Translations under genes and position numbers: made by a program
In this document: piece by piece, positions 16,823 through 26,749 of the stretch
Layout: every line of letters begins with the position of its first letter
How positions within the stretch are numbered: the stretch's first letter is position 1
Notes under the pieces: generated by a model
What the model was told of the DNA's origin: nothing
Database searches by the model: none
Seen by the model: the letters and a program-made list of their open reading frames with translations, nothing else
DNA from: Salpingoeca rosetta
Lineage: Eukaryota; Protista; Choanoflagellata
Assembly: GCA_033442325.1 (NCBI GenBank)
Contig: JAWQFM010000011.1
Span: forward strand, 455,131 to 519,130
DNA length: 64,000 nucleotides
Direction of reading: 5' to 3'

Positions 16823-19800
16823 ATGGCTGATGATGTTGGCTGCTGTGGCTCGGGCGAAGACACGCCCATGACGTTCAAGGAAGGAGGTCAGTGGTGTTTC
16901 TGTCTCTGTGTGGGTTCGTGTGTCAGTGCTGTTTATGTGTATGTGTGTGTGCGTTTCTGTGTCTGTGTGTCTCTCTCTGTTTGTCTATGTCTCGATGTCT
17001 TTGTGGTTGTCTGTGCATGTTCATACCCTGACGTGACCACTCATACCCAAACGTTTGCTCTGCATGCACACGCCTCCGCGCGGTGCGTACCTTTTTGTGT
17101 GTTTCACTGCCGATGTGGCACAGAGGTGGTGAAGCGACTGGAGCCATGGGTGGCGGAGGAGCCGCTGCAGCTGACCACGGCGCAGCTCAAGTACGATGAA
17201 GCCCAGGCCAAGCTCGCAGGAAACAAAACGCCTGCTGCGGAGGACCAGGTGCTGTATTGGGGCGAGCGAGACGACCAGGATCGACCACACGGGTTTGGCC
17301 GCTGCCTGTTTCTTGGCACCCTGGACGCCTACAGCGGCGAGTGGCGGCACGGCCAGTTCTGTGGCCTTGGCCTCTACCGGTACAACAACCACAACCGCTC
17401 CACCTACGCCGGCTACTTTGGCAAGGGCAAGCCGCACGGCCTCGGCTGCTTCATGAACATGGGCCGCAACGAATCCTCCATCCACTCATCGTCCCTCGAG
17501 CAAGCCACCTCAGACCTCCAAAGCACCGTGCGTCAATATGCGCGTGCGTGTGTGTGGAGTGTGTGTGCGTGTGTGTGTGTGTGTGGAGTGTGTGTGTGGA
17601 GTGTGCATGTGTGTGCATGTGTGTGTGTATGTGTTCGCGTTTAGGTATTCGCATGTGCAGCAAACACCACACCAGGCGCCAGTGCTCACACATCAACACA
17701 ACACGCACTTTGTCCCACCATCCCCTCCCCCCCCCCCACACACACACACCCTCACAGGGCGGTCACTTGAAGCTGGAGCGACTCGACTTTGAAACAAAAC
17801 GCGTGCTCGCCGGCAGATTCCACAAAGTGCGCGCTCGCCCCAGTGGCTCAACAGTAGTGCACTGCGTCCTGTTGTTGTCACCGCTGCGTTGCAAACACTC
17901 CGCTCATACGCACTCCATCCACTCACTCACTCACTCACTCCACACATTCACTCACTCACTCACACACTCACTCACACACTCACTCACTCTCAACCAGGGC
18001 GCGTTTGCGGTACACGAGCAAGAGCCGTCTGCGTACTCGACGGCGCTCAAGGTGCAGCGTGACGCCATCCAGCTAGAGACGTGGATCAACCAGGCACTTG
18101 GGGGCACTGATGAGGAGGAGGAGCAAGACAACGCAAAGACGCGCGCAAACCCGCGCCCAAAGCACGACCCCACCATGCCCGACTACTTTGACGGCACGTC
18201 GCATATGGACATGGCACACCTCACCCCCGGCGAGACTTCCCAGCTGCTGCGGCTGCTGCACCGCTGTGCCGTGTGCTGCAACCTGGGCTTCTATGGCCCG
18301 GAGAAGCGCGAAGAGATTACGCGCGGCAAGACATATCGCCAGTGGTTCAACCGCGGGTTTGAGCTCGTGCAGTCCCTACCAGCCGTGCTCAGCAGCAACG
18401 GGACGGGTCTGGAGCTGGACACCAGCGCGTATGTTGGTGGTGGCGCCCACTCCTCCTCATCACGCGGTGGCAGCGGCGGTCGAAAGGGGCGAACGCGCCA
18501 TGCCCTCGACAGCACAAGCAGCTACTCTGGGCAGCACGACAGCACATCTGCTTCATCCGCCACCCACACAGGCACAACAGGCAGCGGTACGGGCACGGGC
18601 ACGAGCACTGCCAGCACGGCCACGGGAGCATCATCGTCATTATCGTCGTCGTCGGCAGCGCCAACGCTCGGCGCACGTGTCAGCAGCGTCTCCATGCACG
18701 TGGAGGACGCGCAGGGCCTGCCCGTGATGCTGTGCATGCGCGATGCATACCGGTACAAGGTGACACCCGCTGGCGCGGAGCTTCGTGACCCATACATTGG
18801 CGCCGAACGCTTCATCATCACCTTCCTCTCCCCGCCGCTGGGCCAGGACGTGAGCGAGCACGCCCTGCGCCAGCGCGCGTCCCTTGTCAGTGTAGACTTT
18901 GTGCTCAAGCTGCTTGGTGCGCAGGTGCAGGTGGTGGTGACTGGGCACAGCTATGGCGGGCTCATGGCACGCATCTTCACCGAGCGCGTGCTGGATGCCC
19001 TTGAGCCGTCGCCCGAGTACGTGGCGAGCGTGACTGCCAAGACGTCGCTGGGCCTGTTTGGCGGCATGTTTGCAGGCAAGCGGCAGCAGGGGGACGAGCA
19101 CGATGACGACGCGCAGGGCGTGCCCACGTCCACGACTGCAGGGCTGTCGTCATCATCATCACCAACAGCGCCTTTGACTGGTGCGGCCCGGCGCCGCGAC
19201 TCAAACCGCACCTCAAACCGCAGCTCGCAGCGCTACAGCGCGGTGGCGGGCCAGCGTGATGGCGCCACAACAGCTGCTGGGACAGATGGATCGACAACAG
19301 GAACAGGTTCAGCAGCAACCGGCAACACCAGTGGCGGTGCAGGGACGACAACAGGGTCCACCGCCACGACAACATCGTCAGCAAATGGCGGTGGTGATGA
19401 CGAGCATGGCAGCGAAGAAGCGCGTGCTGGCGAGCTGCCGGAGCATCTGAAACTGGCACAGGGCTTGTATTGCGTCACGTTTGGGGCACCCCCACTGCCG
19501 ACGCGCCGCAAGACGCTGCGCACAGACTGGATGCTGTGGGCGCGGGCGCACGTGCACCAGGTGTACAGCACGCAAGACCGCGTGCCGTACATTGCGTGCG
19601 CGGTGGCGCGGCGTGAGAGCTCCCAGCGCAAACTGCACAGGGTGCTGTGCCAACACCGCGCCGTCGCTGCCCAGTGGGACGTGCAGGAGTACCTGGATGA
19701 GCTTGATGTGCGGCGGTATCGTGAGCCCGTGCATGTGCACCAGCAGACGCTGCGCGAGGTTACAAACACGGTCAAAGCTGGGCTGATGGGCGTCAGCGTG

Positions 19801-25800: not shown

Positions 25801-26749
25801 CACGTGTATGTCTTTGTTTGAGTGTGTTCAATGATTGTCGTGTGGGTGTATCTCTTCGTCCGCCCGCCTGTGTGGGGTTTTGTTGCTGTTGTCGCCTGTG
25901 ATTGATTGATTGATGCCCCCCTCCCCTTGGAATTTCCCCCTGCATCGTGCACATCTCTCGTCCCTACCACCACTACCAACACCGCTGCCGTGCACACATC
26001 GTATGCGTCAGGAGAGCAACCTGGACGTGATGCGTGAGGCCGAGGACCACCCTGCCCTGCGCCACATTCTCTGGTCACAGGACGATCTCCGCATCCACCT
26101 CCGCAGCGTGCGTGCCGCCCCCTGCTTGTGTGTGTGTGTCTGTGTGTCAGTGTGTATGTGTTTGTGTCTGTGTCTGTGTGCGTGTATCTGTGTGTGTATC
26201 TGTGTGTGTGTCTGTGTGTGTGTGTCTGTGTGTGTGTGTGTGTGTTTGTCTATCTGTCTGTGGTGATACAAGTTGCAGTCCTGCGTGCATTCATGTCTCT
26301 TCCGTCAACCCTTGATTGATGTTGCTGTGTGCAGATCTGCGTAACGCATTTGAACCTTGACCCGGAGCTTGTGGACCTTGGCCTCGGTACGCATTCTTTG
26401 TGCTGTCTCAGACCAAGCGTCATGCATTCCCACAAGAAACCAGACTCACTCACTCACTCACTCACTCACTCACTCACTCACTCACTCACTCACACACACA
26501 CTCACTCACTCACTCACTCACTCACTCACTCACCACCACCACCACCACCTGCCCAAAGGCATGGACTCTGCTGAGTTCCGGTCGACGAACATCTCGCTGC
26601 CAGCCATGCACTCCCTGAGCGTGGGAGCAGGGAGCACAGGGCACAGCCGCGCGGACAGCAGTGGTGCTGGTGATGGTGCTGGCAATGGCAATGGCGTGAA
26701 GAACTTGAACGTGGATGGTGAGCAGCAGGAGCCAGCCTCGCACGTGTGA
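16823..26749 (+). CDS. Large uncharacterised multidomain protein: MORN repeats, class-3 lipase-like domain, helical/low-complexity region, C-terminal P-loop GTPase; about 16 exons including a 4-kb exon (17998-21990)
   Basis: MORN: [43 protein letters not shown]. Lipase_3: [29 protein letters not shown]. GTPase: [27 protein letters not shown]. Exon phases join in frame with canonical GT donors and CAG/AAG acceptors. The last exon is less certain. Confidence 0.8.
23347..23530. repeat. (CACT)n microsatellite in intron
   Basis: Long cactcact run; a similar run lies at about 26445-26530. Confidence 0.9.
24283..24361. repeat. (CAA)n microsatellite in intron
   Basis: Direct trinucleotide run; another is intergenic at about 31007-31070. 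Confidence 0.9.

Follow-up and report, generated by a model that had tools for sequence, protein, structure and literature searches.

The window analysed here is a 64,000-nucleotide (nt) stretch of the genome of the choanoflagellate Salpingoeca rosetta, namely positions 455,131–519,130 of contig C11 in an assembly (G000) of 55.4 Mb in 68 contigs. Between positions 16823 and 26749 of the window, on the + strand, lies a gene of 16 exons with an ATG at 16823 and a TGA stop at 26747–26749. The exons are all bounded by GT-AG introns, and the spliced coding sequence (6,396 nt) contains no internal stops and encodes a protein of 2,131 amino acids (aa), which comprises, in this order, MORN repeats, a class-3 lipase domain, a conserved middle domain and a C-terminal P-loop domain. 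The coding blocks are separated by short introns rich in (TG)n and (CACT)n repeats, and low-complexity linkers account for ~36% of the protein. Neither a transmembrane segment nor a signal peptide-like segment was found in the 2,131-aa chain (the highest 19-residue hydropathy, 1.77, lies inside the lipase core), and any membrane contact of the protein would therefore be peripheral.

The exons are listed below together with the evidence for each. Three relatives, which are described later, are cited in the list: P0001, a protein found in a search with exon 4; P0003, an open reading frame (ORF) from the transcriptome of Hartaetosiga balthica; and L007, a contig of a relative from Tara Oceans.

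16823–16886, + strand: exon 1, 21 aa plus one base; predicted as the sole GT/AG pairing with an open frame into exon 2
17124–17527, + strand: exon 2, MORN repeats; donor GTGCGT, Pfam MORN match, collinear with the MORN region of P0003
17758–17853, + strand: exon 3, short linker; AG and GT borders, gapless alignment to P0003 over both borders
17998–21990, + strand: exon 4, 1,331 aa; N-terminal conserved block, Lipase_3, middle domain and helical region
22276–22407, + strand: exon 5; AG/GT and frame logic, and in L007 it follows exon 4, fused to exon 6
22635–22923, + strand: exon 6, highly conserved; L007, in which exons 5 and 6 are a single exon, confirms their joint
23155–23283, + strand: exon 7; its 3′ end is the loose end of reads and contigs running into exon 8, and its acceptor (23152 or 23155) is predicted
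23563–23677, + strand: exon 8; RNA joint 23677>23903, plus a loose end to exon 7
23903–24105, + strand: exon 9, a terminal block common to both paralogues; RNA joints
24390–24625, + strand: exon 10, with G1, the conserved Thr1856 and G3; RNA joints, 48% and 43% identical in the paralogues
24836–24967, + strand: exon 11, the helix that follows switch II and the beginning of the strand behind it; supported by an RNA joint, a loose end and pieces of contigs
25279–25335, + strand: exon 12, 57 nt; seen from loose ends ahead of 25279 and of 25456, from joint 25331>25456 and from a gap of 53 nt in the spliced contig
25460–25666, + strand: exon 13, with the G4-like NTKFD after a hydrophobic strand; RNA joints
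26012–26107, + strand: exon 14; RNA joint 25663>26009, donor GTGCGT predicted from read depth and contig piece lengths
26335–26386, + strand: exon 15; read depth, open frame, and a 385-nt contig with 150 nt ahead of 26558 that fits exons 14 and 15
26559–26749, + strand: exon 16, containing the stop; contig pieces begin at 26558

Two raw RNA runs and two contig runs (X4 and X6) were mapped to 23533–27400; a (CACT)n simple repeat occupies 23414–23532, between exons 7 and 8. The paired RNA reads on this interval all ran in one direction, and such one-way orientation denotes a + strand transcript in most stranded RNA libraries. The RNA showed five GT-AG joints (23677>23903, 24104>24389, 24621>24832, 25331>25456 and 25663>26009), and exon 8 was directly preceded in 17 RNA reads and 2 contigs by GCTCCTGAGCCGCTTCCTTCCGGATACAGA, which is the 3′ end of exon 7 (23252–23281). 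A 4,166-nt contig spliced at all five joints contains 3,189 nt upstream of exon 8. Because exons 5–7 account for 550 nt of these, ~2.6 kb must fall in exon 4, across the lipase Asp and His, by arithmetic from lengths and the 30-nt consensus. When the read-supported exons are joined, they form a single open frame, which stays open from exon 4 to the stop. Transcript depth runs past the stop to ~26880, with depth and molecule ends near 26876. In the RNA-like runs X4–X7, 0.67–0.69 of the sampled words from 17995–26749 were present, and the exonic share of this stretch is 0.67.

The joints of exons 4 to 7, as well as those of exons 1–3, were set by GT-AG and frame logic. Exon 4 is 40–46% identical to P0001, whose contig (L001) has the same AG/GT exon borders, and it also matches P0002 (a marine metagenome protein) and P0003. 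L007 carries exon 4, then an intron, then exons 5 and 6 fused, and reproduces the predicted junction ...LVDLFSTFF|. The locus thus holds one gene, and one transcript as far as the reads reach. An earlier note, drawn from the DNA letters without database searches, had proposed a single protein of roughly 2,100 aa and a single transcript here. The length, start and stop of the model agree with it, and the five joints, the exon 7–8 link and the 4,166-nt spliced contig bear out the transcript within that range. The 57-nt exon at 25279–25335 had been missed in it, and several exon borders differ from those of the open frames.

Exon 2 encodes three consecutive N-terminal MORN repeats of 23 residues each (~17249–17467), the number given in the earlier note. 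The Pfam MORN model (PF02493) matched exon 2 with 36.2 bits (cut-off, 22.5; E 4.2e-9); two stretches were scored by Pfam, and the third was counted by eye from the pattern YxGxWxxGxxxGxG. Such tandem 23-residue repeats are shared with junctophilins, plant PIP5K and MORN1–4. In known MORN proteins, however, the repeats are paired with a kinase, a transmembrane anchor or nothing, whereas here they are paired with a class-3 lipase, and no paper describing that pairing in one protein was found in a literature search.

The features of the lipase domain are as follows.

18700–20040, + strand: class-3 lipase domain, predicted to be an alpha/beta-hydrolase; supported by Pfam Lipase_3 (over the cut-off in relatives), hhalign, PDB sequence matches and the conserved triad
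18943–18960, + strand: GHSYGG (aa 504–509), the nucleophile elbow, with S506 at 18949–18951
19471–19491, + strand: CVTFGAP, the TFGxP strand
19573–19587, + strand: QDRVP, with the candidate catalytic Asp, D715, at 19576–19578
19975–19995, + strand: YHSIATY, with the candidate catalytic His, H849, at 19978–19980

GHSxGG, TFGxP, DxVP and HxxxxY thus occur in the order characteristic of class-3 lipases (PF01764), which include fungal lipases, EDS1/PAD4/SAG101 and diacylglycerol lipases (DAGL). A low-complexity insert of ~140 aa separates the Ser from the Asp, and ~135 aa separate the Asp from the His. Alignment of the domain by hhalign to a bona fide Lipase_3 protein (P0005, from a liverwort) gave 97%, and the closest solved relatives by sequence are EDS1, SAG101 and PAD4, EDS1 being the best PDB match. 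In the EDS1 alignment the nucleophile elbow and the TFGxP...DxxP block are both aligned, such that the Ser and Asp fall on the corresponding EDS1 blocks, with weak E-values; the His is assigned by conservation only. GHSxGG, DxxP and HxxxxY are kept in the window gene, in P0001 and P0003 (all orthologues that cover the lipase) and in all three paralogues of this genome. As much of the family outside the triad has diverged to under 30% identity, the invariance of the triad fits selection on catalysis. The Ser-Asp-His candidates that the earlier note had picked out are therefore in the predicted order and invariant in orthologues and paralogues. Lipase_3 exceeds the Pfam cut-off of 22 bits in P0003 (27.1), in the paralogue on contig C11 (25.3) and in P0001 (22.6). 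The MORN repeats and the class-3 lipase domain are, as judged from these matches, real.

The lipase domain differs from that of its relatives in its setting, within a 2,131-aa chain with MORN repeats in front, a P-loop domain behind and a low-complexity insert inside. Members of the EDS1 family have a C-terminal EP (EDS1-PAD4) helical domain, whereas none was detected here: for the complete exon 4, Pfam at E≤1 listed lipase and hydrolase models only. DAGL alpha and beta carry four N-terminal transmembrane helices ahead of Lipase_3 and fungal lipases carry a secretion signal, neither of which the window protein has. A match of Rx_N to exon 5 (E 0.0049) was far below the cut-off and was taken as coiled-coil noise.

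The middle domain follows the lipase.

20290–21243, + strand: middle domain (aa ~950–1270), the best-conserved part of the protein

Blocks of this domain are ~90% identical between species, and a conserved helix follows it. No family in Pfam or Atlas matched it. In a model of low confidence, beta strands precede a long helix and Ig-like matches are weak at most, and we treat the domain as a putatively beta-rich, undescribed domain. The earlier note had singled out neither this domain as the best-conserved part of the protein nor the family of three genes described below.

The motifs of the C-terminal P-loop domain are as follows.

24452–24478, + strand: G1, GPQQAGKST (Walker A; GPQQAGKS at aa 1830–1837, with K1836)
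aa 1853–1857, + strand: SGSTK, with Thr1856 at the switch-I position, invariant in the paralogues
24581–24592, + strand: G3, DCFG (aa 1873–1876), after a hydrophobic strand
25505–25519, + strand: G4-like NTKFD (TKFD at aa 1967–1970), after a hydrophobic strand

Four exons in two frames encode the domain, which reads, in order, strand, GPQQAGKS, helix, Thr1856, hydrophobic strand, DCFG, hydrophobic strand and TKFD. The DxxG motif lies 37 residues past the P-loop lysine, and TKFD lies 94 residues further. The exon 10 motifs are invariant in one alignment, and G1, the Thr and TKFD are conserved in the paralogues. G3 reads DCFG in the window gene, DSFG in the paralogue on C11 and DCLA in the paralogue on contig C2; the C11 paralogue keeps TKFD unchanged in an exon that has diverged elsewhere. 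All of the motifs named in the earlier note, those of the lipase included, were found at the positions it gave and in one reading frame of the spliced model, and the Thr of SGSTK that it had nominated for G2 is the invariant Thr1856.

Two paralogues of the P-loop exon were found in this genome (E 9e-15 and 1e-5). Like the identity of exon 4 to P0001 and the invariant triad, these matches show that the signal exceeds chance.

G000:C11:~437,900–445,000 (L003:2780–9788): C11 paralogue, ~30 kb upstream of the window gene, with the same order as the window gene
G000:C2:~2,112,100–2,121,000 (L005:2135–6712, L005:9606–9776 and L006): C2 paralogue, the third member of the family

The C11 paralogue contains, in order, MORN, Lipase_3, a region that resembles the middle domain and ends in DLASMAYLKAVLLRQAAMRL, a block like that of exon 9, then the P-loop exon and the TKFD exon. 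Its lipase motifs are GHSIGG, EDPVP and NHAINIY, and its P-loop exon (at C11:443,777, 35 kb upstream of that of the window gene and 48% identical to it) carries GAQGAGKS and DSFG. Since its lipase lies in one exon and has no low-complexity insert, it would make a better construct for structure work. In the C2 paralogue a single exon of 1,526 aa holds MORN-like repeats, GHSVGG, an acidic insert of ~550 aa, GDVFP and HMWRTY, and middle-domain-like blocks were recognized by eye. The P-loop exon (C2:2,119,614; 43% identity) lies ~3 kb downstream of this exon and ~6 kb from GHSVGG; it reads GPQGVGKT, with DCLA at the G3 position, and its G4 region lies in a run of Ns. That three old paralogues conserve the domain order argues more strongly than anything else for a functional combination and against an accident of annotation.

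Lipase-like coding pieces (TTGHSLGA and VTFESPG) were also observed just upstream of the C11 paralogue (L003:905–2146, + strand; C11:~436,100–437,350), where Pfam had no match at E≤0.1. These pieces may represent either additional 5′ exons or a small lipase gene in its own right.

A word-based search with exon 4 returned one protein, P0001 (40% identity; 46% in the alignment), and a HMMER search with P0001 against 1.84 billion representatives returned only five, P0001–P0005. P0002 comes from marine metagenome contigs, including Tara; P0003 is the H. balthica transcriptome ORF, of 1,108 aa; P0004 is a fragment; and P0005, the liverwort Lipase_3 protein, is a marginal match (E 5.8e-4). P0003 contains MORN (23.2 bits) as well as Lipase_3, both over their cut-offs, and is collinear with residues 27–322 of the model across the exon 2/3 and 3/4 borders (E 5e-42), so that in a second species MORN and lipase belong to one protein on transcript evidence. 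Homologue searches with the P-loop exon and exon 6 returned none within a length window of 0.55–1.75×, which leaves out long or fragmentary kin. The sole match in a scan of Joint Genome Institute (JGI) metagenomes with the P-loop alignment was a bacterial branched-chain ABC transporter, which shared the P-loop only and was discarded. The homologue set therefore consists of choanoflagellate or unassigned metagenome sequences and one marginal plant lipase, and within the collections searched the family appears only in choanoflagellates. Literature searches found no description of a protein joining MORN, a class-3 lipase and a P-loop GTPase-like domain. This agrees with the earlier note, which knew of no such protein; nor was one found in the protein collections searched.

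From these results, we read the locus as a single choanoflagellate gene of 16 exons, encoding a 2,131-aa protein with MORN repeats, a class-3 lipase, a middle domain and a divergent GTPase-type P-loop, which belongs to a small family and would act as a nucleotide-gated lipase. We assign this reading a probability of about 60%. What appears to be new is the architecture, the domain types (MORN, Lipase_3 and a G-type P-loop) being already known, and by the defining features of the EDS1, DAGL, dynamin, GBP and RHD3 families the protein falls outside all of them. A number of findings weigh against this reading, and they are taken up in turn below for the P-loop domain, the lipase domain and the gene itself.

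On the P-loop exons, every Pfam and NCBIfam family stays below its cut-off. Pfam MMR_HSR1, the only GTPase model with an alignment spanning G1 to G3, scores 18.8 bits on exon 10 (cut-off, 21.9; E 0.0018); Dynamin_N matches the locus at profile positions 1–18 only, which is the P-loop (E 0.82); and genome scans with GBP, RHD3 and MMR_HSR1 listed no match at the locus. In family and PDB searches the P-loops of ABC proteins and kinases score as well as those of GTPases. In hhalign comparisons the spliced G domain gave ~90% against in-genome GTPase profiles, the value was the same when the non-P-loop residues were shuffled, and an ABC control gave 94%; the unchanged value after shuffling indicates that the signal comes from the P-loop alone. 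In language-model features, the 78-aa exon 10 of the window gene falls among AAA_14 clusters (Atlas). AlphaFold2 prediction of the read-through frame 24392–25666 (three of the four G-domain exons plus translated introns) gave a predicted local distance difference test (pLDDT) score of 42.5 and was unusable.

The domain could accordingly be an ATPase, another P-loop NTPase or a degenerate nucleotide-binding scaffold, and among the alternatives considered here this one keeps the most weight, although as a minority possibility. It would account for the best family and PDB matches of the P-loop exon, which include ABC-F/ABCE1, CMP kinase, AAA_14 and nSTAND with E-values equal to or better than those of GTPases, for the lack of any hhalign signal beyond the P-loop, and for DCLA in place of DxxG in the C2 paralogue. 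However, these non-GTPase matches cover ~20–35 residues around Walker A, and the domain has no ABC signature, no hhhhDE Walker B and no second AAA/STAND region. The nSTAND, AAA and ABC identities were rejected as generic, because the P-loop of the neighbouring DEAH helicase gene draws the same kind of match. The short spacing from Walker A to DxxG, the invariant Thr between them, and the strand and TKFD kept in a diverged paralogue together form the TRAFAC GTPase pattern. Furthermore, the 123-aa exon of the paralogue falls, by language-model features, among the G-domain clusters of GBP, RHD3 and MMR_HSR1 (0.91–0.93), and once the P-loop was left out of the hhalign comparison the top match fell, in register, on the NKxD strand of Rab, Rag and IF2, a result that is not significant (P 0.039).

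The layout of the domain therefore resembles that of TRAFAC GTPases of the Era/EngB/HflX (MMR_HSR1) type, with G1 GxxxxGKS, a switch-I Thr, DxxG at 37 residues and [NT]KxD after a hydrophobic strand, and it appears unlike that of ABC, AAA and kinase P-loops, whose matches cover Walker A only. It differs from small GTPases in the longer distance from G3 to G4 (94 residues), and from large GTPases (GBP, RHD3/atlastin and dynamin) in having no dynamin signature, no GBP/RHD3 ‘RD’ motif and no clear G5. A dynamin-like identity was considered because ‘IVVALPATD...TKFD’ resembles the dynamin ‘ILAVxPANxD...TKLD’ by eye; it was rejected, since the Dynamin_N profile hidden Markov model, phmmer and hhalign lent it no support (phmmer against the dynamin-like and RHD3-like proteins of this genome gave E > 0.4) and the 37-aa G1–G3 spacing is unlike that of dynamins. 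The language-model placement of the paralogue exon is the one pointer towards the dynamin superfamily. On this sequence pattern the domain is probably a GTPase. The earlier note had called it one outright: G1, G3 and G4 do stand in the expected order and spacing, but the GTPase family models are all below cut-off and the hhalign signal is that of the P-loop.

As to the lipase, Lipase_3 (PF01764) scores 18.0 bits on the window domain, below the cut-off of 22, and the match covers the surroundings of the nucleophile elbow only; the low score is attributed to the ~140-aa insert, which splits the domain. Structure predictions were poor (pLDDT 43 and 42.5) and gave no usable triad geometry or G fold. 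It is conceivable that the lipase-like domain is non-enzymatic and serves in ligand sensing or scaffolding, as in EDS1, PAD4 and SAG101, so that the protein would be a signalling hub. This seems unlikely, given that the Ser, Asp and His are invariant in three orthologous sequences and three old paralogues in a family otherwise diverged to <30%, that the EP domain of EDS1 is absent from the exon 4 scan, and that the E-values to EDS1 are weak and the Rx_N match far below cut-off.

As to the gene, the joints of exons 1–7 rest on GT-AG logic, frame and relatives, the reads having been mapped only from 23533 on; the RNA nature of runs X4 and X6 is a guess, although their contigs are spliced; and an 8,692-nt contig of run X4 extends ~3.4 kb beyond the predicted ATG. 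P0003, which is labelled complete and is the only transcript-derived orthologue, ends after the middle domain in a Lys/Glu/Asp-rich tail with no G domain, an end that may be real or an assembly break, and no G-domain orthologue was found in any other species searched. Two adjacent genes, a MORN-lipase gene ending at ~22000–23300 and a P-loop gene starting at ~23560–24390, with the long frame a stitching artefact, would suit both the end of P0003 and the joints of exons 4 to 7, which were set by logic and relatives and not by reads, but are very improbable, because exon-7 sequence precedes exon 8 in the 17 reads and 2 contigs, the fully spliced contig reaches back 3.2 kb from exon 8, the frame is open from exon 4 to the stop, exons 5–6 follow exon 4 on L007, lipase and P-loop exons stand in the same order 5–7 kb apart in two paralogues, and read depth is even over exons 8–16 with no cluster of transcript starts there.

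If the locus does encode a nucleotide-gated lipase, the MORN repeats would hold the protein at a membrane or a partner, and the lipase domain would be a working acyl-hydrolase acting on a lipid substrate, with the protein peripheral to the membrane. The nucleotide-binding domain in cis, most likely GTP-binding, would gate or localize the lipase through its nucleotide state or through dimerization. The proposals of the earlier note that the lipase is GTP-switched and membrane-targeted and takes part in phagosome processing or defence are guesses. Such coupling of a nucleotide domain to an output would be analogous to that of ROCO proteins (LRRK2 and the Dictyostelium Roco kinases), which couple a Roc GTPase to a kinase in cis. 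The likeness would be one of logic only: both are very large multidomain proteins with a G domain in one chain with an enzymatic output and repeat modules, whereas the window protein has no Roc, COR or kinase, its output is a lipase, its G domain is C-terminal, and there is no homology.

More tentatively, and with the odds clearly against it at present, the three paralogues may form a family of self-contained nucleotide-gated lipases, so far choanoflagellate-only, in which a G domain in cis switches or assembles a membrane-tethered class-3 lipase and the middle domain is the coupling element. Lipid hydrolysis would in that case be regulated in a new way. Bacterial lipids govern the behaviour of choanoflagellates, the sister group of animals, and such a family could be tied to how these closest living animal relatives deal with bacterial prey or with lipid cues from bacteria. 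A lipase with a built-in nucleotide switch would offer a compact regulatory design that can be tested, and a handle on lipid signalling or prey processing in this lineage; a strongly conserved domain of unknown fold is part of the family as well. Should the P-loop be inert or bind ATP, the finding shrinks to a lineage-specific multidomain lipase, unannotated but ordinary; the case for greater interest lies in the possible coupling of lipase and G domain and in the middle domain.

In the neighbourhood of the gene, a divergently oriented gene at 15176–16381 (− strand) encodes an N-terminal acidic region and the DEAH-type helicase P-loop mentioned above. The 8,692-nt contig that runs past the ATG may reflect a head-to-head transcript overlap with this helicase gene or a longer 5′ part of the lipase gene.

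Within the gene, an intron piece at 25820–26038 is covered by X4 and X6 contigs and has no depth in the raw RNA runs; one 5,063-nt contig ends there, and another continues into sequence outside the window. Its interpretation as an alternative exon was rejected, since all its frames contain stops and its sequence occurs only once in the genome; pre-mRNA or a retained intron is the likeliest source. A 544-aa frame at 24200–25831 (+ strand, frame 2) is open through two TG-repeat introns, and several further introns can likewise be translated throughout, into CVCVCV or THTHTH. With such stop-free introns in this genome, ORF-based gene callers would read introns as protein.

Downstream of the gene, a 1,013-aa open frame with long Asp/Glu runs occupies 27480–30521 (+ strand); from 27900 onward it matched no Pfam family at E≤0.001. 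A separate transcript starts in the contigs at ~26800–26950.

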